Shown here in pieces: positions 1 to 51,599 of a stretch of DNA of 64,000 bases. Under the pieces are notes generated by a model. It was not told the origin of the DNA. It saw only the letters and a program-made list of their open reading frames with translations, and did no database searches. Positions within the stretch are counted from its first letter, which is position 1, and the number at the start of each line of letters is the position of its first letter. Where the stretch lies: the sequence record MT586120.1; one strand, given 5' to 3'. Both the position numbers and the translations under genes were made by a program.

Positions 1-942
1 ATGTCATTCAAAGATCTAAAGAAGCAATCATCTCTCGGCGCTCTTACCCAGAAGCTCGTCAAGGAAGTAGAGAAGATGAATACAGCTGGCTCAAGCGGTG
101 ATGACCGCTACTGGAAGCTAGAATGTGATAAAGCCCAAAACGGTTATGCTGTGATCCGTTTCCTTCCACAGCCCGAAGGTGAAGATATGCCTTTCGTCAA
201 GATGTATTCCCACGCATTTCAAGGTAAAGGTGGCTGGTATATTGAGAACAGCTTGACTACACTAGGTCAGAAAGACCCCTTGTCTGAGTTCAACTCTGAG
301 CTTTGGAACAATGGTACTGATGCTGGTAAAGAGCAAGCACGTAAGCAAAAGCGTAAGCTCACATATATTGCTAACATTATGGTCGTCAAAGACCCAGCAA
401 ACCCCCAGAACGAAGGTGGAGTATTCCTCTACAAGTTCGGTAAGAAAATCTTCGACAAGCTTATGTCTGCTATGCAGCCTGAGTTTGAAGATGAAGAAGC
501 AATCAACCCATTCGACTTCTGGGAAGGCGCTAACTTCAAGCTCAAGGCAAAGAATGTAGCTGGCTACCGCAACTATGACTCTTCTGAGTTTGCGAAGGTA
601 GAAGCTCTTCTAGGTGGTGATGACGAAGCACTTGAAGGACTATACAATAAGTTGAACTCACTATCCGAGCTTGTTGCTCCAGATCAGTTCAAAGAGTATG
701 AAGTTCTTAAGAAGCGTCTCAATCAAGTCCTAGGCTTAGGTGCTCCTAGCAGCCGTCCAGCTGCCCAAGAGGATTCTGGTGATGAGGACATTGAAGAGCA
801 GCTACGGTCCGCTAGACCTGCCTTTAAGAAGGAAGTAGCAGCCTATAGTGAGCCTGAACTACCAACAACATCAACACCAGAGCCTGCCTCTAGTGAAGAT
901 GACGATGCTCTTAGTTGGTTCCAGTCACTTTCCGAAGATTGA
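1..942 (+). CDS. gp32: T4-like single-stranded DNA-binding protein
   Basis: GNGYAVIRFLP-like, YIENSLTTLGQKDP, NPFDFWEGANFKLK motifs; acidic C-terminal tail. Confidence 0.95.
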   Translation: MSFKDLKKQSSLGALTQKLVKEVEKMNTAGSSGDDRYWKLECDKAQNGYAVIRFLPQPEGEDMPFVKMYSHAFQGKGGWYIENSLTTLGQKDPLSEFNSELWNNGTDAGKEQARKQKRKLTYIANIMVVKDPANPQNEGGVFLYKFGKKIFDKLMSAMQPEFEDEEAINPFDFWEGANFKLKAKNVAGYRNYDSSEFAKVEALLGGDDEALEGLYNKLNSLSELVAPDQFKEYEVLKKRLNQVLGLGAPSSRPAAQEDSGDEDIEEQLRSARPAFKKEVAAYSEPELPTTSTPEPASSEDDDALSWFQSLSED

Positions 943-1311
943 TTAACTCTGATACAACTGCATCAGTGGTAAAGTCAAAGCAGCCTGAACTTCATTAGGC
1001 TTTAACATATACAGAGGCGTAGTATTGTTCCCAGTACTATAGTTCCTCTGTTTTTTTATGTGTAAATTTATTCCAGTCCAGCCCCACTCATAGACCCCCA
1101 ACACCTGCACAATAGGATACATATCCGTCAAGAAGTCTGGTTTCTCTGCAATGTAAGTATAGACATAAACCTTACCAGGAATAGGCATAGGAGCGATACT
1201 ATCAGAAAGAACCGCTTCTAGTTCTTTCATAATATCTTCAGAGTTTTCAGTACCAATAAGTTTGTCTAACAGAGGTCTAACTCTGTTGTTGCTCTTTTTC
1301 TTTTTAGCCAT
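943..1311 (-). CDS. short gp2-like DNA end protector protein
   Basis: PGKVYVYTY..D.YP..GWTGINLH resembles the T4 gp2 core; adjacent to gp4. Confidence 0.55.
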   Translation of the reverse strand: MAKKKKSNNRVRPLLDKLIGTENSEDIMKELEAVLSDSIAPMPIPGKVYVYTYIAEKPDFLTDMYPIVQVLGVYEWGWTGINLHIKKQRNYSTGNNTTPLYMLKPNEVQAALTLPLMQLYQS

Positions 1312-1742
1312 TAGACCCCTAGCTCCTTTTCAGTCATAATTTTGAACTCCCACCCCTGATCCAGGCAGAACTCCCTAGCAGCTGCCCATTTAGCCTGATT
1401 CTGAGAGAACATAGCCTCTGCTAGGAGAGTATTTTTAGTTCTCCTCTTGTATTTGGGTGGTTGAGTCTCCTTATATGGCTTAACTTCAATTAATATCTTT
1501 TCCCTCTTATCATCCTTATTAATTGCTTCCATATAAAAGTCTGGGTAATACTTAGCCATCCTTTTTTTGACAGGATTGTAATATGGGATTACAATTTCTT
1601 CTGATGCCCACTTAATTATTTTACTGTTAGTATCACAATAACGCATAAGTTTGCGCTCCCATAACGACCTATAAACAATCATATTGGGATTACCAATATA
1701 TTTCTTGGGATTCTCTGGTTTATAGATTCCTTTATAGGACAT
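1311..1742 (-). CDS. gp4: head completion nuclease
   Basis: YKGIYKPENPKKY, YRSLWE, WASEEIVIPY, YYPDF, IEVKP, NQAKW..A motifs. Confidence 0.93.
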   Translation of the reverse strand: MSYKGIYKPENPKKYIGNPNMIVYRSLWERKLMRYCDTNSKIIKWASEEIVIPYYNPVKKRMAKYYPDFYMEAINKDDKREKILIEVKPYKETQPPKYKRRTKNTLLAEAMFSQNQAKWAAAREFCLDQGWEFKIMTEKELGV

Positions 1743-1772
1743 AAATAGAGTAGGTAGTTCAATAGTATTTAG
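1741..1772. promoter_or_regulatory. divergent T4-type late promoters
   Basis: ATAAATA on + (1741-1747) and CTAAATA on - (1766-1772) between divergent late genes. Confidence 0.6.
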
Positions 1773-1773
1773 T

Positions 1774-2520
1774 GTGCCTAGAGTATTAACGCTAGAAGAT
1801 GTAAAACCACTACTTGGTAATTTGTCAAGGTCAAATTACTATCAGGTGCAGTTTGGTGGATTATCACCTGCATTGCTTGGAGCACTATCTGCAAGGGGCG
1901 TGGATCCATTTTTTGTATCTAATGATTCTGGGTTGCTTTGCTATCAAGCACAGCTTCCAGGATCTTCATTAGCTAGAACAGAATCTACAAACTTTACTGG
2001 TATTACAGAAAACTTTGCCCATAGGAAAGTATTTACTCCATTGAGCTTAGACTTTTACTGTGATGATAGATATAGATCTCTAAAGTTCTTAGAGCACTGG
2101 ATGGAATATGCCGTCAGTGGTAATGGGCTTAGTGGATATGCTGACAGTAACTACACATATAGGATGCAATATCCTAACGATCCTCTAACTGGGTATAAGT
2201 GTAGTGGTTCTAAAATATATAAGTTTGAAGCCAATGTGAGTAGGATTATTGAATACTCTTTTATTGGATTATTTCCGATTAACTTATCATCAACTCAAGT
2301 TAGATATGGTGCAGATGGTGAACTCACCAGAGTCAGTTGTCAGTTTGGATATACGAGATATATTGCTGGATCTGTATTGTCTATAGATGAGGCTAGAGGT
2401 TTCTCGAATAATTTACAGTCTGGTCTAACTAATATTACGGGCAACATTAATACCGTAATAGATACTGTAGATAGACTTAGAGGAACAGCTGCAAACGTAC
2501 TAGATCTATTCACCAACTAA
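1774..2520 (+). CDS. tail-tube-like baseplate protein (gp54/gp19 family)
   Basis: GTG start; LLCYQAQLPG, KFLEHWMEY, GLFPINLSS, V..QFGYTRY motifs; next to gp48. Confidence 0.75.
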   Translation: MPRVLTLEDVKPLLGNLSRSNYYQVQFGGLSPALLGALSARGVDPFFVSNDSGLLCYQAQLPGSSLARTESTNFTGITENFAHRKVFTPLSLDFYCDDRYRSLKFLEHWMEYAVSGNGLSGYADSNYTYRMQYPNDPLTGYKCSGSKIYKFEANVSRIIEYSFIGLFPINLSSTQVRYGADGELTRVSCQFGYTRYIAGSVLSIDEARGFSNNLQSGLTNITGNINTVIDTVDRLRGTAANVLDLFTN

Positions 2521-2528
2521 ATAGTATT

Positions 2529-3467
2529 ATGGCTAAATCATCCCCCAAACCAAGCTTACAATACCCCACCAATATTGCTAATGGCAATAATGACTACTTT
2601 CATTTGCAAATTTTTGAATATAAACCACTGGGTCTTGGTGGGGGTGGTGATAATATATTTGATGTTCCGTCAAGTCAAGCTCAAAGACCTAAAGTAGACA
2701 AAGAAACTAGTGGTGATAACCAGTCATACTTAGGTCAAATTATATTGCCTATGCCAGACAACATTGGTGATAATAACTCAGTTTCTTGGGACACTGATAC
2801 ATTAAACTCATTGACCATTGCCGGTGCAGGTACGCTCAGTGATGCTATATCAAAATTAAATTTGAATAATCCTGATCCAGGAGGGGCTTTAGATACAGTA
2901 AAAGATAGTGCATCCAAATTTTTAGATGCACTAAAAGATATTGACGTAAGAGGTAGTTTAAAAAATGCGTTAATAACTAGTGCCATAACTGGGGGAAATG
3001 TTGATCCAAACTCAATAGTTAGTAGAACAACTGGACAAGTATTAAACCCAAACTTGGAGCTTCTATTTAAGGGAGTTATTTTGAGGCAGTTTAACTATAG
3101 CTTTACACTAACACCAAGAACCAGTGAAGAGGGAACTCAGATTAAGGGTATCATAAATACTCTTAAGAAAAGAATGTCAGCAAAAAATACCACAGGTGCT
3201 GGTGCTGGTATATTCATTAAGGCACCTGATGTGTTCCAGCCAAGATTCATGCAAGGTCAAAAACCACATCCATTTTTATATAGTATAAGGCAGTGTGCTT
3301 TAGTGTCTATGAATGTTAATTATGATGGTGCGGGAATATATGCAACATATGGAGACGGCACACCAGTTAAAATGTCTTTACAGATGTCATTTAGAGAATT
3401 GAGTCCGTTATACTCTGAAGACTATAAAGATGGTTTACCCGGTCCAGATGAAGGAGTTGGATTCTAA
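2529..3467 (+). CDS. gp48: baseplate tail-tube cap
   Basis: LQYP, LPMP..I.D.N.V.W, NPNLELLFKG..LRQFNYSF.LTPR, L.MSFREL. Confidence 0.9.
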   Translation: MAKSSPKPSLQYPTNIANGNNDYFHLQIFEYKPLGLGGGGDNIFDVPSSQAQRPKVDKETSGDNQSYLGQIILPMPDNIGDNNSVSWDTDTLNSLTIAGAGTLSDAISKLNLNNPDPGGALDTVKDSASKFLDALKDIDVRGSLKNALITSAITGGNVDPNSIVSRTTGQVLNPNLELLFKGVILRQFNYSFTLTPRTSEEGTQIKGIINTLKKRMSAKNTTGAGAGIFIKAPDVFQPRFMQGQKPHPFLYSIRQCALVSMNVNYDGAGIYATYGDGTPVKMSLQMSFRELSPLYSEDYKDGLPGPDEGVGF

Positions 3468-4117
3468 TGACTTATTTCAGACAGCTACCGAATATTGAAT
3501 ATCAAAACTTCCTAAATGATCGCACAGGATCACAGGACTATATTTTAATGAAGAATATTTTCCTTAGGGGAAAATTGAGAGAAGACCTAGAAAGTAATTT
3601 TACAGTATTTCAGAAGTATAGTATTAAAGGTGATGAAAGACCTGATGAGATTGCCTATGATATATACGGATCATCTCAATATGACTGGGTTGTCCTAATT
3701 ACTGCTAGAATCATTACTTATCAAAATGACTACCCATTAACGAGTCAAGAACTCTATGATTATACCTTAAATAAGTATGGTGTTGAGGGTATGAATGCTA
3801 TCAATCACTATGAGAGTGTTGAGGTTAGAGATAGATTGGATAGGTTGGTATATCCAGCAGGTATCGTTGTAGCTAAAGATTTTACTATACCCAATCCAGA
3901 TACCCCAACATCATTTATCAGCCCTGTAGTTGGTGTTAGTAACTTTGAATATGAGACAAATAAGAATGATAGAAAGCGTAATATCACTATTCTAAGACCT
4001 CTATACTTAAATCAATTCTTGAATGATATGAGAGAAATCTCTAAGTATGGATTTAACTCAGAATATATTAATTCAACTACGATTAGAGCGGAGAATAGCA
4101 AGACTAAGAGCCCCTAA
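3467..4117 (+). CDS. gp53: baseplate wedge subunit (LysM-like)
   Basis: YFRQLPNIEY, Y.IKGDERPDEIAYDIYG..YDWVVL, E...N..KR.I.ILRP. Confidence 0.92.
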   Translation: MTYFRQLPNIEYQNFLNDRTGSQDYILMKNIFLRGKLREDLESNFTVFQKYSIKGDERPDEIAYDIYGSSQYDWVVLITARIITYQNDYPLTSQELYDYTLNKYGVEGMNAINHYESVEVRDRLDRLVYPAGIVVAKDFTIPNPDTPTSFISPVVGVSNFEYETNKNDRKRNITILRPLYLNQFLNDMREISKYGFNSEYINSTTIRAENSKTKSP

Positions 4118-4159
4118 TTAGCCGTCTAAATAACTATAGCATTCTACAAATTCTTTATT

Positions 4160-4870
4160 ATGGCGCTTCCTAAGATTGCCAAAGTGACTCACGAGACTAT
4201 TATTCCCTCAACTGGGAAGAAGATTAAGTTTCGTCCGTTTCTTGTGAAAGAGGAAAAGGTACTTATTTTAGCTCGCGAGTCTAACGACCAAAACGAGATG
4301 GTTAAGGGTATCATTGATGTAATCAATGCTTGCGTTATGACGAAAGGATTTTCTACTGAAAATCTATCCACTTTTGATATTGAATATATTTTCCTTAGTA
4401 TTAGGGGTAAGTCTATTGGGGAAGATGTTGAAGTTGTTGTTACTTGCCCTGATGATGGAGTGACTAGAGTCAATCATACTATTTTCTTGGATGAGGTAAA
4501 AGTCATCTTTGATGATGAACACTCAATGCAAGTTAAGATTGATGATACATATTCTGTTCTGATGAAGTATCCTAGTATTGAAGCTGTTATGGCTGCTGAT
4601 TCTGAGAATGTAAGTGTTACTGATAGTCTAGAACTTATTGCATCTTGCATAGATCAGATTTATTCTGAGGAGGACTCCTGGTCTTCTAGTGATAGTACTA
4701 CAGCAGAATTGGTCGAATGGGTTGAAGAACTTGAACCAAAGCAATTTGAGGGAATTGAGAAGTTCTTTACTACAATGCCTAAACTAAGTCATACCATTCA
4801 GGTTACTAACCCAGAAACTAAGGTGACTAGTGATGTTGTACTTGAGGGGCTAGGATCTTTTTTCGCGTAA
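4160..4870 (+). CDS. gp26: baseplate hub assembly protein
   Basis: MALPK, FRPFLVKEEKVL, FDIEYIFL.IRGKSIGE, CPDD, LEGLGSFF. Confidence 0.92.
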   Translation: MALPKIAKVTHETIIPSTGKKIKFRPFLVKEEKVLILARESNDQNEMVKGIIDVINACVMTKGFSTENLSTFDIEYIFLSIRGKSIGEDVEVVVTCPDDGVTRVNHTIFLDEVKVIFDDEHSMQVKIDDTYSVLMKYPSIEAVMAADSENVSVTDSLELIASCIDQIYSEEDSWSSSDSTTAELVEWVEELEPKQFEGIEKFFTTMPKLSHTIQVTNPETKVTSDVVLEGLGSFFA

Positions 4871-40318: not shown

Positions 40319-41278
40319 ATGCACACCACCAAGACTCTCTATGTAGAGACAGACTCTGCCGAGACAGACTCTGCTAAGGTTACGGGGCTTTTCAGAAACA
40401 TTATTGGTGACGCATTTGACGCAGATGAACGCGCCAAGCAATATAAGGGGAAGAGACGCCAAGACTTCTTTGGTCATTGGGATTTACCTCCAGGTATACG
40501 TGATTACCTCATTCATACAGAACTTAAGCGCCCCTGTTATAGTGAACGAGTGATCTGGAGAGATCCTAAGGTATCAGATGTGCAGTCGAAAGAAGTATTT
40601 GACTTTTTTGTTGATAAAAACAGTACAGTAGCAGAAATGAAGCAAGTTGTTATTGATCTTATAAGTGAAGTTGTCCTTTCTATTGGTGGAGAGTCTAAGG
40701 TAAAGCCGTTTATTCCCACTACATGGCAGAGAGACGCTATTAGATTTGTTGCTCAGTCTCTATCTGAAGGTAAGACTACTCTAATGTTGGAACTTGCTGC
40801 TCGCTTTGGTAAGACTGGAACTAGCGTTTGTATGTTTGACTATTCCAGTGCGGATGTTATGGTAGTTACAAACTATGTAAAAACTGTTAATAAAAGTTTT
40901 GGTAATACTGTTGTTGACTTTTTTGCGGACAGAATGGTCTATGTTGATGCTAGATCTAAAAATGCAGAGTCTATGATTGATTCTGCACTAGCTAATGGGA
41001 AAAAAGTTGTTCTTGTATGTAGTTTACACCATAGCCAAAATTTAGATTATAATATTGATATGATCCGAAAGTATGATAACAGGATAGTTTTTGTGGATGA
41101 AGCGGACTTTGGTTGTCATAAAGACAAACAAGTAAGTCGAGTCAAACGACTAAGAGAAAATGTTCCGCTCATTCTTATGACAGGCACTGGTGCGGACAAG
41201 GCAGCTGCTAGCCATCACATAGATGGTATGCTCTCAACCACATATTTTGATATGCTGTTACAGACTAACAAGGCTTGA
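40319..41278 (+). CDS. SF2 helicase, N-terminal (RecA1) half
   Basis: PTTWQ (Q motif), ARFGKT (Walker A-like), VDEADFG, MTGTG; ends before RecA2. Confidence 0.8.
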   Translation: MHTTKTLYVETDSAETDSAKVTGLFRNIIGDAFDADERAKQYKGKRRQDFFGHWDLPPGIRDYLIHTELKRPCYSERVIWRDPKVSDVQSKEVFDFFVDKNSTVAEMKQVVIDLISEVVLSIGGESKVKPFIPTTWQRDAIRFVAQSLSEGKTTLMLELAARFGKTGTSVCMFDYSSADVMVVTNYVKTVNKSFGNTVVDFFADRMVYVDARSKNAESMIDSALANGKKVVLVCSLHHSQNLDYNIDMIRKYDNRIVFVDEADFGCHKDKQVSRVKRLRENVPLILMTGTGADKAAASHHIDGMLSTTYFDMLLQTNKA

Positions 41279-41303
41279 CATGGCTACCCACACACCGTAC
41301 AAT
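41275..41303 (+). promoter_or_regulatory. sigma70 promoter
   Basis: TTGACA-17-TACAAT. Confidence 0.75.
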
Positions 41304-41309
41304 ATTCAT

Positions 41310-42626
41310 ATGAAACAACCAACTATCGACCTATCTCGCTTTGAGTCTGACTTCCAAGGCGTAGTCTCCCCCCTCCAAAACTCAATCCCATCCGTCAGAC
41401 TCTATGAATGGAATTTGGCAGATTATGCTGCCAAGCAGGTTGAGCTTGCCCCTGAAGAAGCATACGCATCATGGATAAAATCAATGGACCGTAATGCAAT
41501 GGGTGATGGTCTTAGGTCTGCCGCATATTGGCGTGGATTCTATGACATTTTGATTGGTAAGAATTGGGAGTATGAATCTCTAGCATTAGAAAATTCCATT
41601 GGAAGTATGGGGTCTGTTATGCAATTCATTCCACCCCACGCCAACGGGCAGGCTGGTGCAGCTTCTATGGTTGTAGAAATTGCCAAAGCCGCACTAGGTC
41701 AAAAGTATCACGTCAAGTTTCTTTCTGGGGCAGATAACGTCAAAAATGAGACTGCAGAAAGGGAGGCGGAAGATGCTTTAATTGAAGCCAGTAGAGTTGG
41801 TAAAAAGGTGTGGTTTATATCTCAAGGTATGGCATGTAGATCATTCAGTGTGCCTGAAATTGATACTGTTCTTCTTACATATGATGGTGGTGCTATGGGT
41901 GCCACTATTCAAAAACTTAGCCGTGCTTGTACTGCGGGTGAGGTAGATAAGTTGGCTAAAGTTGTTGCGATCAGTATTGACCCCAACCGAGATGATAAGC
42001 TGACTGGGTTTATCCTAGATGCCGCAGTTAAGGCAAGCGAAGAGAATGAAACTGATTTGAATGAAGAGCTTCGTCGTGCTCATGCTACATTTCCCCTCTT
42101 CACTCAGCATGGTGATGCTTTTCTTCCTATTTCTGAGGATGAATACTTAAAGAGAGCAATGAAGCTGAGTAGCGTCAAGCGTCTTGCTGTATCCCGTGAG
42201 GCACTGATCAATATCGATCCTGCTGTTGCCATGGATCTAGTGGAACAGTTTAATAGTAATGTCTCTCCCACTAATCGAGCCGGTACTAAAGATGTTGGTA
42301 TTAAGGGAAGTCGCTTCCAAGATACTCCCACACCAAAGGCAAAGGTAGACGACAATGAGGAACAGAAAGCAATGAACCGCCTTCAGGAACAACTAACTGC
42401 CTTTGTTGAGCATGTTGAGTTTATATCATACCTAGTAGACGAAGAGTATCCCTCCATTGATTCTATCCTCTCTTCTGCTGAGCTGAATGATCAGAATTCC
42501 TATGAGTTTCAAGAACTGGCGGGGATGATGCCCAATGTCGTTCGTCAGTGTCTTGGATTGGGTCTCCTCTCTCGCACTTGGATTGACTCCACTATCTTGG
42601 CTTCCCGACAGGAGCACACTAACTGA
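41310..42626 (+). CDS. SF2 helicase, C-terminal (RecA2-like) half
   Basis: ISQGMACRSFSVPEIDTVLL (motif V-like), IQKLSRA (motif VI-like). Confidence 0.7.
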   Translation: MKQPTIDLSRFESDFQGVVSPLQNSIPSVRLYEWNLADYAAKQVELAPEEAYASWIKSMDRNAMGDGLRSAAYWRGFYDILIGKNWEYESLALENSIGSMGSVMQFIPPHANGQAGAASMVVEIAKAALGQKYHVKFLSGADNVKNETAEREAEDALIEASRVGKKVWFISQGMACRSFSVPEIDTVLLTYDGGAMGATIQKLSRACTAGEVDKLAKVVAISIDPNRDDKLTGFILDAAVKASEENETDLNEELRRAHATFPLFTQHGDAFLPISEDEYLKRAMKLSSVKRLAVSREALINIDPAVAMDLVEQFNSNVSPTNRAGTKDVGIKGSRFQDTPTPKAKVDDNEEQKAMNRLQEQLTAFVEHVEFISYLVDEEYPSIDSILSSAELNDQNSYEFQELAGMMPNVVRQCLGLGLLSRTWIDSTILASRQEHTN

Positions 42627-42672: not shown

Positions 42673-43734
42673 ATGAAAAACAACCTCCTCTTCCGTCTCA
42701 AAGGTCAGCAGGCAGCCGCCCAAGAACTTGTTTCTGAGATCCCTGAGCGTCTCTTCACTGACGATAGTATTGTATTCTATGATCCCGCAATGGGCGGCGG
42801 ACAGTATCTTCAAGAGATTCTAAATAGGGCAAAGGTTGATTATGATAGAGATATTTCGGCAAGGGTGTTTGGCTCCGAAGAGTCTGTAGTTCACCTCAAC
42901 TGGGTAAAGCGCAATACCTCAGTTCCCAAAGAAAATATTACTAAAGGACCAGCAGACATGAATTTTAGTGCGTGCATTGGTAACCCACCATACTCAGATA
43001 GAACAAGCGACAGCCCCAACTCAAAGAATCTTGATAGTGTATTCTTTGAAAATGCGATTAGTCGGTGTGGATATGTGTCTATGATTATTCGTGCTAAGCA
43101 TTTTGTTGATGCTCGTAGCAACTTCCGCCGTAAGCTGTTCACTAGTGGTCACCTAGTTTCTATAAAGAGACTCGATGATTCTGTGTTCCCCACTATTCAG
43201 AATACAGAGACTTGTGTTGTTACTTGGGATAACAACCACTCAGGTCCATGTAAGATTGAATATAAAGATGGAACGGTTCATCAGATTAATCTCACCCGCG
43301 ATACTGTAATTAAACTAGATAATCCTGAGTTTGGTAAAGTCATTGAGAACAACCTTGCGGATCGTTGGATTCGTGGTCATCTTTCGCGTGGTCAAATTGT
43401 TGAGGGTGATGCACCTATGATTGAGATTATGGGATCCGGCAAATCGCCAGTTATTGCGAACGTTTCGGTTGGTCAAGAAGATACTGCCCGCAATCGTTAT
43501 GGTGTTATTATGAATGTGAATGGTTCTCATGGTAGTTTTGGTGTAGTTCATATTAAACCTTTCAGCGCATCAATCTCCAATAGCGTGATCGCTCTGTTAA
43601 CTAATACCGAAGAAGAAGCAATTATTTTATATAATTATCTAAAGTCTGAGGAAGTCAGTGGTATTGTTGCATCAAACAAACAGAAGCAGTGTAATACCAG
43701 GACTCTTTTTAGTAATATCCCATCTCCACTATAA
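42673..43734 (+). CDS. Eco57I/TaqI-like adenine methyltransferase with target-recognition domain
   Basis: FYDPAMGGGQYL (motif I), IGNPPY (motif IV). Confidence 0.85.
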   Translation: MKNNLLFRLKGQQAAAQELVSEIPERLFTDDSIVFYDPAMGGGQYLQEILNRAKVDYDRDISARVFGSEESVVHLNWVKRNTSVPKENITKGPADMNFSACIGNPPYSDRTSDSPNSKNLDSVFFENAISRCGYVSMIIRAKHFVDARSNFRRKLFTSGHLVSIKRLDDSVFPTIQNTETCVVTWDNNHSGPCKIEYKDGTVHQINLTRDTVIKLDNPEFGKVIENNLADRWIRGHLSRGQIVEGDAPMIEIMGSGKSPVIANVSVGQEDTARNRYGVIMNVNGSHGSFGVVHIKPFSASISNSVIALLTNTEEEAIILYNYLKSEEVSGIVASNKQKQCNTRTLFSNIPSPL

Positions 43735-43742
43735 AATTAATT

Positions 43743-44144
43743 ATGACTAAAAACAAGCACAATGAGAATGTAGGATCTGATATTGAACGTTCTAATGAGC
43801 GCATTGATCAGACTGGTGAAGTATTCACTCCTATGGAACTGTGCCGTGAGATGGTCAACGAACTACCACTAGATGTACTACAGAATCCTAAGAGCACATT
43901 TATTGATAATTCTGCTGGGTCGGGCAACTTCATCATCGCTCTCCGTGACAGACTACTAGAATATCACGAGTTATCACATATCTTAGACAATATGCTCTAT
44001 ACTGTTGAGTTTATGGAGGATAATCACGCCGAGTTGTGTGAGAGAATAGGTGTGCCTGTTACTCACCCACATTATGTTAGAGCTGATGCTACCACATATG
44101 ATTATAGCTTTGGTGAGCCTATAGGATTAGAGGCATTCTTCTAG
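43743..44144 (+). CDS. stand-alone SAM-binding half of an N6-adenine methyltransferase
   Basis: TGEVFTP, FIDNSAGSGNF, LYTVE..EDN; no NPPY. Confidence 0.8.
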   Translation: MTKNKHNENVGSDIERSNERIDQTGEVFTPMELCREMVNELPLDVLQNPKSTFIDNSAGSGNFIIALRDRLLEYHELSHILDNMLYTVEFMEDNHAELCERIGVPVTHPHYVRADATTYDYSFGEPIGLEAFF

Positions 44145-44219: not shown

Positions 44220-44537
44220 ATGATCGAAGCTATCGCAGCTCCAAACACACAGGTCACTGAAGAGGGTGGACTCTTCTACATCACTATGAGCGTTGGTCCT
44301 GATGAGGTATGCACTGCTTGTTATATGCGCGACAAGGCGCAGAGAGTGGTCATTATCCAATTAGATACACCAGTGGAGTATAGAGGCAATGGCTACGCTA
44401 CAGCCCTCCTGGAGAGCATACAGAGGCGTGAGAAGACTGGTCCTATCCGTGTGATTAGTACTAGCCATGCCGTTGGTTTCTACAATAAGCTAGGATACAT
44501 TGAAGTATCACCATACGTGTTCCAAAGCTCAAACTGA
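44220..44537 (+). CDS. GNAT acetyltransferase
   Basis: EYRGNGYATALL, AVGFYNKLGY. Confidence 0.85.
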   Translation: MIEAIAAPNTQVTEEGGLFYITMSVGPDEVCTACYMRDKAQRVVIIQLDTPVEYRGNGYATALLESIQRREKTGPIRVISTSHAVGFYNKLGYIEVSPYVFQSSN

Positions 44538-46770: not shown

Positions 46771-47559
46771 ATGGAAACCAATTCAGAAACTATGAACAAG
46801 CTACTCAATGGTGAATGTCTTGAAGTTATGAAGACACTAGCTGATAATTCAATTGATATGGTTTTCTGTGACCTACCTTATGGTACTACACAGAACTCTT
46901 GGGATACTATCATCCCATTCGATGAGTTGTGGGCAGAGTATCATCGTATCGTCAAGATTGATGGTGCTATTGTACTAACAGCACAACCACCATTTGATAA
47001 GGTCTTAGCTTGTTCAAATCTAAAAGACTTCCGTTATGAATGGATATGGGAGAAGAATAAAGCAACTGGGCACCTAAATGCTAAGAAGATGCCTATGAAG
47101 GCACACGAGAACATACTAGTATTTTATAGAAAGCTTCCTACATATAACCCACAGATGACCACAGGTCATAAGCCAATGAATGCAGTATTGCCTAAGAGCA
47201 ATATGCCTGCACCAAAGGAGAAGAGAAACTATAACCACGTAGAAGAGCGACTAGGTAATCCTGGTGGTGGAACTAGTAGGTATCCAAGAGATACTGTTAG
47301 GTTCCCCGTTATCAACAATGATGACCCAAAGAAGTTCCACCCAACACAGAAACCTATCCCCTTGATTAAGTACTTCATCAAGACATATTCTAATCCAGGT
47401 GATGTTGTACTAGACAATTGTATGGGCTCAGGTTCTACCTGTATTGCTGCATCTAATCTAGATCGACAGTTTGTTGGTATTGAGATGAGTGAGGAATATT
47501 ACAACCTAGCAGTTGAGTGGGTCGAATCCGAACGTAGACTCACCCAGTTCTTTAACTGA
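46771..47559 (+). CDS. beta-class N4/N6 DNA methyltransferase
   Basis: GECLEVM, DLPYG, HENILVFY, HPTQKP, VVLDNCMGSGST. Confidence 0.92.
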   Translation: METNSETMNKLLNGECLEVMKTLADNSIDMVFCDLPYGTTQNSWDTIIPFDELWAEYHRIVKIDGAIVLTAQPPFDKVLACSNLKDFRYEWIWEKNKATGHLNAKKMPMKAHENILVFYRKLPTYNPQMTTGHKPMNAVLPKSNMPAPKEKRNYNHVEERLGNPGGGTSRYPRDTVRFPVINNDDPKKFHPTQKPIPLIKYFIKTYSNPGDVVLDNCMGSGSTCIAASNLDRQFVGIEMSEEYYNLAVEWVESERRLTQFFN

Positions 47560-49955: not shown

Positions 49956-49996
49956 GTAAAGTGTCCACATGCCCGACCCATCCACAACTACTATAG
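49948..49996 (+). promoter_or_regulatory. degenerate promoter cassette
   Basis: GACAGTA..AAGTGTCCAC; hairpin eroded. Confidence 0.55.
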
Positions 49997-49998
49997 AT

Positions 49999-50922
49999 AT
50001 GAAATTTGATGTTATTATTGCCAACTTCCCATTTGATGACGCCAATAGTTCTGCCAAGAATGGTAAGCTATGGAAGAAGTTTACAGACAAGTGTATTGAT
50101 GATCTACTAAAGACTGGAGGCACAATGAATATTGTATCTCCAACTACTATCTTATCTAAGATCGACTATGGCATGAAGAAGGTCAAGCAGTTCTCAACAA
50201 CTCAGAGTTTAGTTGCTATTGATTATTCAGTTGGTGAGAAGTTCTTCGCAACTATTGGTTGTCCAATCTGTAAGTGGACTATGGTAGATAAGCCATATGA
50301 TGGTAAGACTGTTGTGACTGATATTAAAGGTGACTATGAGTTTGATATCCGAGTTGGTGATGGACTTCCTATGCGCCATGAGCGTATGGTACTTCAGAGT
50401 ATTCTTGATAAAATCCAGAACTCAACCCACCCACGCATTCCAACAAAAACGGGACAGCAAATAACAGGTGAAGAATATAAAAAAAATGGTAAAAATCTAA
50501 AAGCCACTGACTGTGGTACATATCCAATATTCCACAGCGGAAAAAAAATACAATATACTTATACACAACCAACTACTGGAACTGGGCTTAAGTTTGTTAT
50601 TCCATTCTCCGCATCCCATAGATCAAGATTTATCACTACTGGGTATATTGGAATGTTTAATGCTTGGTGTCCGATCAAAAATGAAGACGAGGGTGAGTAT
50701 CTAATGAAGATTATGGATCATCCACTTATTGATCTCTATATCACCAAGCAGAACCGATATATTAATTATGAGTCTAATAAGTTCACTACAACGACAGGCT
50801 TCGCTCAAGTTGTCAGGACTAACCGCCTACCATATCTTGAGAGCTTCGAGAATCTAGCAGAACAGTTCAATCTAACTTCAGAAGAAGTTGAGTATCTAGA
50901 AGGAGTTGGTATCAATGTCTAA
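49999..50922 (+). CDS. catalytic/TRD half of an Eco57I-like adenine methyltransferase
   Basis: Starts MKFDVIIANFPF (motif IV variant), LKTGGTMNIVSP; no SAM-binding motif I. Confidence 0.75.
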   Translation: MKFDVIIANFPFDDANSSAKNGKLWKKFTDKCIDDLLKTGGTMNIVSPTTILSKIDYGMKKVKQFSTTQSLVAIDYSVGEKFFATIGCPICKWTMVDKPYDGKTVVTDIKGDYEFDIRVGDGLPMRHERMVLQSILDKIQNSTHPRIPTKTGQQITGEEYKKNGKNLKATDCGTYPIFHSGKKIQYTYTQPTTGTGLKFVIPFSASHRSRFITTGYIGMFNAWCPIKNEDEGEYLMKIMDHPLIDLYITKQNRYINYESNKFTTTTGFAQVVRTNRLPYLESFENLAEQFNLTSEEVEYLEGVGINV

Positions 50923-51325
50923 AAACAATCACAATTTAGAGTCTGGATCATCACTGAACAGAAGTGATGATAGAATAATAGAGACCCAAGAGGTATTCAC
51001 TCCAATGGAGTTGTGCCATCTAATGGTACAAGACATACCATTAGATATTAGGAAGAATCCAAAAAGCACATTCTTAGACAATTCATCGGGTAGTGGTAAT
51101 TTTATAGTTGCCCTACTGGAAGACCTACAAAATTATCATTCTAGAGAACATATCATATCAAATATGCTCTATGCAGTTGAGCTTATGGAAGACAATCATA
51201 TAGAAATGTGTGAGCGTCTAGGTATATCAACAACCCACCCACACTTTGTGTGTCACGACGCATTAACATATGATTATAGTTTTAGCGAACCCCTCAATAC
51301 ATTAGATGCAATGCTATTCCACTAA
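50915..51325 (+). CDS. stand-alone SAM-binding half of a methyltransferase (paralogue of 43743)
   Basis: TQEVFTP, FLDNSSGSGNF, LYAVELMEDN. Confidence 0.8.
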   Translation: MSKNNHNLESGSSLNRSDDRIIETQEVFTPMELCHLMVQDIPLDIRKNPKSTFLDNSSGSGNFIVALLEDLQNYHSREHIISNMLYAVELMEDNHIEMCERLGISTTHPHFVCHDALTYDYSFSEPLNTLDAMLFH

Positions 51326-51371
51326 GCAAAGTGTCCACTGCCCCTTGATAGGGGCTTTTTTATGCTATAAT
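51319..51371 (+). promoter_or_regulatory. repeated promoter cassette
   Basis: AAGTGTCCAC, GCCCC/GGGGC plus T-run, TATAAT, TTCATACCAAAC. Confidence 0.8.
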
Positions 51372-51395
51372 TTATTCATACCAAACAACAGGGCA

Positions 51396-51599
51396 ATGGC
51401 TTCTCACTACAATGGCTTCATGGATGACGCGACAGCAGCTCTACCTAATAGGTCCGAGGATGAGTTGACCGAGGTATTTTATTTACTTGAGTTGTTTAGT
51501 TCTCAATACACCCCCGAGGACGGGGACTATACAGAGTACCTAAAGACGAGATTAATCTCATATCATACATCATTAGGTATGATGGATCCAGATCAATAA
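51396..51599 (+). CDS. hypothetical acidic protein
   Basis: ORF between cassettes. Confidence 0.65.
   Translation: MASHYNGFMDDATAALPNRSEDELTEVFYLLELFSSQYTPEDGDYTEYLKTRLISYHTSLGMMDPDQ

Follow-up and report, generated by a model that had tools for sequence, protein, structure and literature searches.

The DNA analysed here (the window) is the 64,000-nucleotide (nt) stretch of Synechococcus phage S-CAM7 isolate 0809CC03 (MT586120.1), a T4-like cyanomyovirus, and window coordinates are the same as record coordinates. Two overlapping genes of this window, large-B and small-B (together pair B), are both labelled "hypothetical" in GenBank. Read together, they look like the two halves of one DNA methyltransferase, a catalytic half encoded first and an S-adenosylmethionine (SAM)-binding half encoded second. 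A paralogue of the small gene, small-A, follows another methyltransferase gene of the window, MTase-A. The positions of these features are summarized in Table 1.

Table 1. Features of pair B, of MTase-A with small-A, and of their surroundings in the window (TRD, target-recognition domain; aa, amino acids)
Feature	Position	Strand	Description
large-B	49969..50922	+	Predicted catalytic half, motifs IV-VIII (motif IV = NFPF) and target-recognition region; GenBank CC030809_00075
small-B	50915..51325	+	Predicted SAM-binding half of 136 aa; motif X EVFTP, I FLDNSSGSGNF, II VELMEDN, III HDALTYDY
Coupling junction	50899..50922	+	GAAGGAG ribosome site within the end of large-B; start of small-B (ATG, 50915) overlaps the end of large-B (TAA, 50920-50922)
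Isolate-variable cassette	49975..51592	+	Swapped as a unit between S-CAM7 isolates
MTase-A	42673..43734	+	Eco57I-type, complete, gamma order: motif I DPAMGGGQY, motif IV NPPY, TRD
small-A	43743..44144	+	Paralogue of small-B, 133 aa, all SAM-binding motifs intact
Two genes upstream of MTase-A	40319..41278 and 41280..42626	+	Match the helicase-like N-terminal part of giant (>870 aa) partners of small genes at loci L015 and L065 (tblastn, blastp)

The catalytic strand FDVIIANFPF is found at residues 13-22 of the open reading frame (ORF) 49969-50922. The two nearest relatives of large-B, P0012 (79%) and P0013 (78%), begin at the methionine that corresponds to an internal one at 49999, so the true start of large-B is probably 49999, the coordinate given in the original prediction. 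Nothing precedes motif IV in this protein according to Pfam and PHROG, and both motif X and motifs I-III are missing. Pfam covers late parts of the models only (71-168 of 171 positions in the Eco57I profile, 122-253 of 311 in N6_Mtase), and the phrog_3689 match (6e-25) runs from position 62 to position 314 of 348, so that 61 positions at its beginning are absent. These matches confirm the original prediction, made from the letters of the window, that the large gene starts at its catalytic strand without motif I.

The same prediction held that the downstream gene supplies only the part with motifs X and I, and it turned out that the Pfam match of small-B is indeed restricted to the early part of N6_Mtase (profile 27-86 of 311), with the two small genes covering profile positions 21-87 at 17-20 bits. 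Motifs X and I-III are present in both small-B and small-A and are invariant across 32 family members; small-B reads QEVFTP where small-A has GEVFTP, and it retains all 38 invariant columns of the alignment of these 32 sequences (A1). Both proteins match phrog_4376, a family with function listed as unknown, over 128-133 of its 134 positions (E 5e-62 for small-B and 1e-77 for small-A). In NCBIfam, no family was found for large-B, MTase-A or the relative P0148 described below, and for the small proteins the one match was a weak, N-terminal one to the Alw26I/Eco31I/Esp3I adenine methyltransferase model.

For small-B, the ORF finder proposed a TTG start at 50906, and the GenBank start is 50915. 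From the latter, the two genes overlap by 8 nt and a GGAG lies 9-10 nt upstream of the small-B ATG, which on sequence is a classic arrangement for translational coupling. The gene with motifs IV-VIII and the TRD comes first and the gene with motifs X and I-III second, so the pair does not follow the one-chain order of gamma-class enzymes. Two contigs from other data sets match this region. One, of 189 nt, comes from an oligo-dT RNA-seq library of marine origin and has exactly the sequence of 51035-51223 within small-B, which is no proof of transcription. The other, a metagenome contig of 587 nt, covers 50771-51357 and shows 21 differences; therefore, the junction between large and small gene is kept in an environmental relative.

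We searched small-B against 1.8 billion representative proteins and got 632 matches at E <=0.001, which show three architectures: stand-alone proteins of about 120-200 aa, the N-terminal part of a gamma-order chain, and the C-terminal part of a permuted chain. For the gamma order, P0027 aligns in BLAST with small-B over residues 14-126 (48% identity) and with large-B over residues 128-239 (29%), its SAM domain passing directly into a GNPPF strand; P0070 likewise has the small part at 11-102 and then the large part at 106-403. Permuted chains, in which the large part precedes the small part, are P0032, P0089, P0148 and Aeromonas phage phiAS5 ORF0215. In P0148, the BLAST alignment with large-B covers residues 2-306 (23%) and that with small-B residues 336-456 (38%), and ORF0215 starts at NPPY, with motifs X and I following near residues 296-335. 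Because both window proteins map onto the same P0027 and P0148 chains, these alignments place the cut of pair B exactly between motif III and motif IV. The cut coincides with the switch point between strands 1 and 4, a known site of circular permutation in amino-methyltransferases (PMC7544214).

P0148 has 453 homologues, and 119 other listed clusters were sorted by regular-expression motif matching. Among these listed clusters, 79 carry motif IV around residue 9 and motifs X/I around residues 320-400; in another 35, motif IV falls within the first 40 residues and motif I was not matched. Of these 35, about two-thirds are halves of about 300 aa, which are 50-54% identical to the first two-thirds of P0148. 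The half P0275 is overlapped by a small gene of 151 aa on three contigs. All nine clusters that we checked by name are unnamed or "hypothetical protein", and cyanophage records mostly annotate the split-methyltransferase genes in the same way. Besides, T4-like Klebsiella phages, such as vB_KpnM_KpV477 (L007:493-2426), carry the permuted enzyme in three pieces: a protein of 381 aa in which NPPY comes after a LEM-3-like GIY-YIG domain (PF22945, 1.9e-15), a protein of 110 aa matching the end of the recognition part, and a SAM half of 153 aa annotated as DNA methyltransferase. The phiAS5 ORF0215 is their fused counterpart.

Structure models were built for the relatives P0148 and P0014, not for the window proteins. 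The AlphaFold2 model of P0148 (59 sequences) reached a predicted local distance difference test score (pLDDT) of 92.3 and a predicted template modelling score (pTM) of 0.90, and its best Foldseek matches were the gamma enzymes CamA, BrxX/PglX, M.TaqI and M.BseCI. A sequence search of solved structures with the gamma-order P0070 gave no match. In VIA-align comparisons, M.TaqI 96-411 (the catalytic half and DNA-binding domain) corresponds to residues 1-279 of the model with Z about 10. The beta-class enzymes M.MboIIA (Z 12.0), M.RsrI, CcrM and M.PvuII align from residue 1 to about 427-455 (Z 10-12), and therefore both ends of the P0148 chain fall within one methyltransferase fold. The model fits a C-terminal SAM half that completes the fold in the beta order, and by homology large-B would correspond to TaqI 96-411 and small-B to TaqI 1-95. 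The claim of a split methyltransferase with swapped order thus stands for pair B, in so far as the two halves map onto single-chain relatives in both orders and the permuted chain is modelled as a complete methyltransferase.

A survey of gene-pair conservation had been proposed with the original prediction. We surveyed 80 IMG/VR loci encoding a small protein at 60-70% identity. In about 60 of the 80, the gene upstream of the small gene carries NPPY, NPPF or NFPF and the two genes share 4-47 nt; most of the remaining loci end at a contig edge. Since the small gene belongs to phrog_4376 and the pairing recurs this often, it is not a matter of chance. The partners of the small gene can be grouped by what lies in front of motif IV. 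Minimal halves (181-205 aa), which include those of P-SSM5 and S-CAM7 0910CC49, have it at residue 9-10; partners with a short cis N-half (240-322 aa) have it at residue 66-80, with about 60 aa preceding it; SKS1-type partners (413-483 aa) have it at about residue 250; and giant partners (>640 aa, most >870 aa) have it at residue 350-660, behind a helicase-like N-terminal region. In a last class, represented by Bellamy and ACG-2014f, the partner is an unassigned gene of 187-200 aa with no motif IV, and a methyltransferase gene lies further upstream. This protein stands between methyltransferase and small gene in several cyanophages, such as Bellamy (gp87, L004:1939-2502) and ACG-2014f (gp052, L005:2985-3587); a PD-(D/E)xK nuclease label considered for it in these two phages was dropped, as it has no Pfam match.

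Some loci contain several catalytic genes for one small gene. At L093 (ENA ERZ23491322 scaffold_13506, 1-4306), four consecutive complete halves (273, 307, 248 and 284 aa) each start with MKFDV..GNPPY and all differ in their C-terminal parts. They are followed by one small gene, 35 nt from the gene upstream of it, and then by a fifth half, which begins at 4010 and runs off the contig end. Each of the four halves, and the small gene too, is preceded by a conserved cassette of about 45 nt that resembles a promoter and contains a TATA-like box. Before the halves, the cassette ends in a mini-ORF of three codons (ATG GCT TTA TGA) with the GTG start 1 nt later, which looks like a re-initiation leader. 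L024, L056 and L075 each have two methyltransferase genes per small gene. In ACG-2014f, a half of 301 aa starting at motif IV is located about 100 kb from the only small gene and is kept at >=94.7% identity in 26 isolates. Directly downstream of this detached half (L100:939-2780, record about 140.2-142.1 kb) is a gene of 293 aa, which by reading of its sequence would be a Dam-like alpha-class methyltransferase, with motif I near the N-terminus and DPPY near residue 200.

Both halves of pair B appear to be under purifying selection. The ratio of nonsynonymous to synonymous substitution rates (dN/dS) of large-B is 0.16 against an L093 gene (307 codons), a relative with the same truncated start, and for the small genes it is <=0.15 where synonymous sites are unsaturated. 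When 54 small subunits were placed in a tree, small-B came out as the sister of those that belong to SKS1-type partners (support 94/91). The nearest longer relatives of large-B are P0014 (44%) and P0015 (43% BLAST identity), both SKS1-type, and large-B equals the C-terminal 280 aa of P0014, which has 524 aa. Because the sister group of small-B and the relatives of large-B are of the same type, the tree and alignments indicate that the two genes were inherited together and that large-B lost about 240 N-terminal residues. Between S-CAM7 isolates, the cassette differs as a whole: KU686212 has an NPPY half of 205 aa in its place, and a small gene that is only 68% identical at the nucleotide level, within flanks that are 99% identical.

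Taking these results together, we consider it likely that pair B is an obligate two-subunit, TaqI-like (gamma-type) N6-adenine DNA methyltransferase, and that the small subunit family acts in trans. This explanation draws on the anatomy of the pair, its homology to both fused orders, the fold of the fused permuted chain, the gene linkage and the purifying selection. We infer from it the following arrangement. The break in the enzyme would lie after strand 3 (motif III) and before strand 4 (motif IV), at the topological switch point of the Rossmann fold, and the small gene would be translated by coupling from the GGAG site within the end of the large gene. The small subunit may contribute motif X and strands 1-3, which would bind SAM in the SAM pocket, and the large subunit strands 4-7, the adenine-binding NFPF loop and the TaqI-type DNA-recognition region at the C-terminus. 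The two chains would assemble as a heterodimer through pairing of strand 1 with strand 4, as within the fused relatives. Such an enzyme could methylate adenine-N6 in the phage DNA, with the large subunit determining the target site, and so protect this DNA from host restriction. Across the family, the conserved small module would serve several catalytic/specificity subunits in trans.

Several observations weigh against this explanation. The Pfam score of large-B (19.7 bits) is below the gathering score of 25.3, and neither small-B (17.2 bits) nor small-A (19.9 bits) reaches the N6_Mtase cut-off of 20.4. Compared with the consensus (D/N/S)PP(Y/F/W), the NFPF of large-B has Phe for the first Pro and conforms at its other three positions (Asn, second Pro, aromatic residue). 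It had been called an atypical motif IV, and it is unusual, though recurring in P0013 and L065; P0012, 79% identical to large-B, has NPPY. The catalytic competence of large-B with this motif IV is a prediction. Besides, many partners of small genes keep a cis N-half, and near-identical small subunits pair both with partners that have and with partners that lack the short cis N-half, which does not fit simple complementation. The fold comparison of P0014 points in the same direction: its model is poor overall (pLDDT 60.7) and reaches about 80-90 over residues 1-250, and residues 163-338 align with TaqI 21-213 (Z 15.8, 22% identity), indicating that SKS1-type partners have a structurally complete TaqI-like cis domain. 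By eye, the N-extension of SKS1-type partners had looked like a degenerate copy of the small protein; this was given up, being unsupported by hhalign, and the fold model has a TaqI-like cis N-half there. In S-SKS1 itself, there is no other Eco57I-type gene for the small subunit to serve, so that the idea of a shared subunit is no explanation for that phage.

MTase-A bears on the same question. The original prediction described the two-gene enzyme as present twice, and this holds for the small genes: small-A is a paralogue of small-B (62% identity, E 1e-62) and begins 8 nt downstream of MTase-A. It does not hold for the first pair as a split enzyme. Because MTase-A has its own canonical motif I and NPPY and passes the Pfam PF07669 cut-off (28 bits against 25.3), small-A is, as judged from these motifs, not needed to complete it. 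Complementation cannot be the role of the small protein everywhere, because MTase-A and the SKS1-type partners look complete and S-SKS1 has only one partner. A possible course is that a small subunit acting in trans would make the cis N-half dispensable, which would explain why cis halves range from intact through degenerate to lost. In the Bellamy methyltransferase, the motif I region contains no glycine.

These points could also be taken to mean that the small protein is a free-standing SAM-binding protein, which for instance regulates or times neighbouring methyltransferases or sequesters SAM, with large-B inactive or otherwise employed. The small gene is equally tightly coupled to complete-looking partners, namely MTase-A and the SKS1-type enzymes with TaqI 21-213 covered; S-SKS1 has that one partner only; and hhalign does not relate the small family to the cis N-half found in SKS1-type partners. 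However, hundreds of relatives carry the same domain covalently fused with a catalytic half, and both orders occur; the fused permuted chain aligns at its two ends with beta-class enzymes, within one fold; and halves starting at motif IV are under purifying selection, which is hard to explain without a SAM site. We therefore regard a free-standing role as unlikely. Still less probable is decay, in which large-B would be an N-terminally truncated, inactive SKS1-type methyltransferase that the small gene merely adjoins. Its correspondence to the C-terminal part of P0014, the long branch of small-B in the small-subunit tree (0.85) and the non-canonical motif IV would suit a remnant, but the low dN/dS was obtained against a relative with the same truncated start, P0012 and P0013 share this start as well, minimal halves, of 181-205 aa and of about 300 aa, make up large and conserved clusters (264 members in one of them), and small-B keeps every invariant residue of its family. 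A programmed frameshift joining both frames into one permuted chain like P0148 seems very improbable to us. The genes do overlap and the fused permuted relatives have the same order, yet the junction has a strong GGAG and an ATG start, the overlap varies among relatives (4, 8, 11, 14 ... 47 nt) with both frame relations, gaps precede the small gene at L093 (35 nt) and in pair A (8 nt), and no conserved slippery site was seen.

Returning to the two-subunit enzyme, we propose a wider model for marine T4-like cyanophages, which is tentative and which we rate at slightly under an even chance. A conserved SAM half-domain of 133 aa would act as a hub that assembles in trans with interchangeable catalytic/recognition halves, each carried as a small promoter cassette, with as many as five at one locus and others about 100 kb distant, providing several specificities at low coding cost; the family would also preserve two-gene intermediates of a permutation from gamma to beta order. 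The idea of a conserved small and an exchangeable large subunit was part of the original prediction. The arrays with 2-5 catalytic genes per small gene and the remote half of ACG-2014f speak for it; the S-CAM7 isolates, which swap both genes as one cassette, do not. If it is true, one SAM subunit for several specificity subunits would be a new build of multi-specific DNA modification, and it would offer a natural template for split, programmable methyltransferases. The shared-subunit model would resemble the swapping of S subunits in Type I systems, from which it would differ by a cut inside the catalytic domain.

Pair B has motifs X and I-III of M.TaqI, CamA and M.BseCI (gamma class; PF07669, PF02384), a variant of their NPPY-type motif IV, and a C-terminal recognition domain of their kind. 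Unlike these enzymes, it is cut between motifs III and IV, has a separate SAM half of 136 aa encoded second, reads NFPF, and scores below the Pfam cut-offs. The linear order of motif IV, TRD and motif X/I is the one that defines class beta, whose members are single chains acting as dimers (PMC7544214). Pair B shares this order with M.MboIIA, M.RsrI, CcrM and M.PvuII (PF01555) at the level of gene order only, and its fused relatives share it in one chain. Neither half of pair B matches PF01555 at E up to 1, and the gamma-type sequence and TRD kinship therefore suggest that the beta-like order arose independently. M.AquI and M.EcoHK31I are natural split cytosine-C5 methyltransferases, in which one methyltransferase is formed by two polypeptides of adjacent genes, as we propose for pair B. 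Pair B differs from the split C5 enzymes in that it would be an amino-methyltransferase whose Rossmann sheet itself is divided, whose genes stand in swapped order and whose small subunit is apparently shared; M.AquI alpha/beta is cut at a domain boundary (PMC5944983).

The amino-methyltransferases are classed by circular permutation of one fold, and the origin of these permutations has been argued mostly from single-chain enzymes. The permutation models (permutation by duplication; fission and fusion) predict a complete enzyme with an extra N-half, independent halves, and fusions (PMC3320104). The earlier evidence consists mainly of single-chain intermediates, as summarised in that paper. The present family contains all the predicted states, with identities to the window proteins of 23-48%: a complete enzyme, enzymes accompanied by an extra SAM half, halves on their own, and fusions of either order. 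The fission-and-fusion route can therefore be tested with natural genes. Our literature search, with REBASE outside its scope, found no two-gene intermediate described for amino-methyltransferases, nor a phage split or permuted adenine methyltransferase, a Rossmann-sheet cut with swapped order, or a shared SAM subunit. Half-enzymes starting at NPPY are likely dismissed as fragments, and the methylation capacity of ocean phages is therefore probably under-counted.

For the other genes of the window, the GenBank record of the S-CAM7 genome contains exactly two small genes and two Eco57I-type genes. The N-half of MTase-A matches the N-halves of P0064 and P0070 and also the C-half of P0148 in BLAST, and partners in L031, L049, L050 and L066 share 40-52% identity with its catalytic/TRD part. 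In the small-subunit tree, small-A is placed in a group of 12 rows with giant or unassigned 187-200-aa partners, in which no well-supported subset holds small-A. The two genes upstream of MTase-A had no match in Pfam or NCBIfam (40319-42626). In MA01, a giant-type N-terminal region is fused to a methyltransferase, the product being annotated as restriction subunit of a type II restriction-modification system. The two helicase-like genes, MTase-A and small-A thus look like a giant module broken into four genes. Directly after small-A, a small gene resembling GNAT-type acetyltransferases is found at 44220-44537 (PF13673 1e-06, phrog_38651 8e-71), and 46771-47559 encodes an ordinary beta-class methyltransferase in one complete chain (PF01555 E 1.4e-29, phrog_67).

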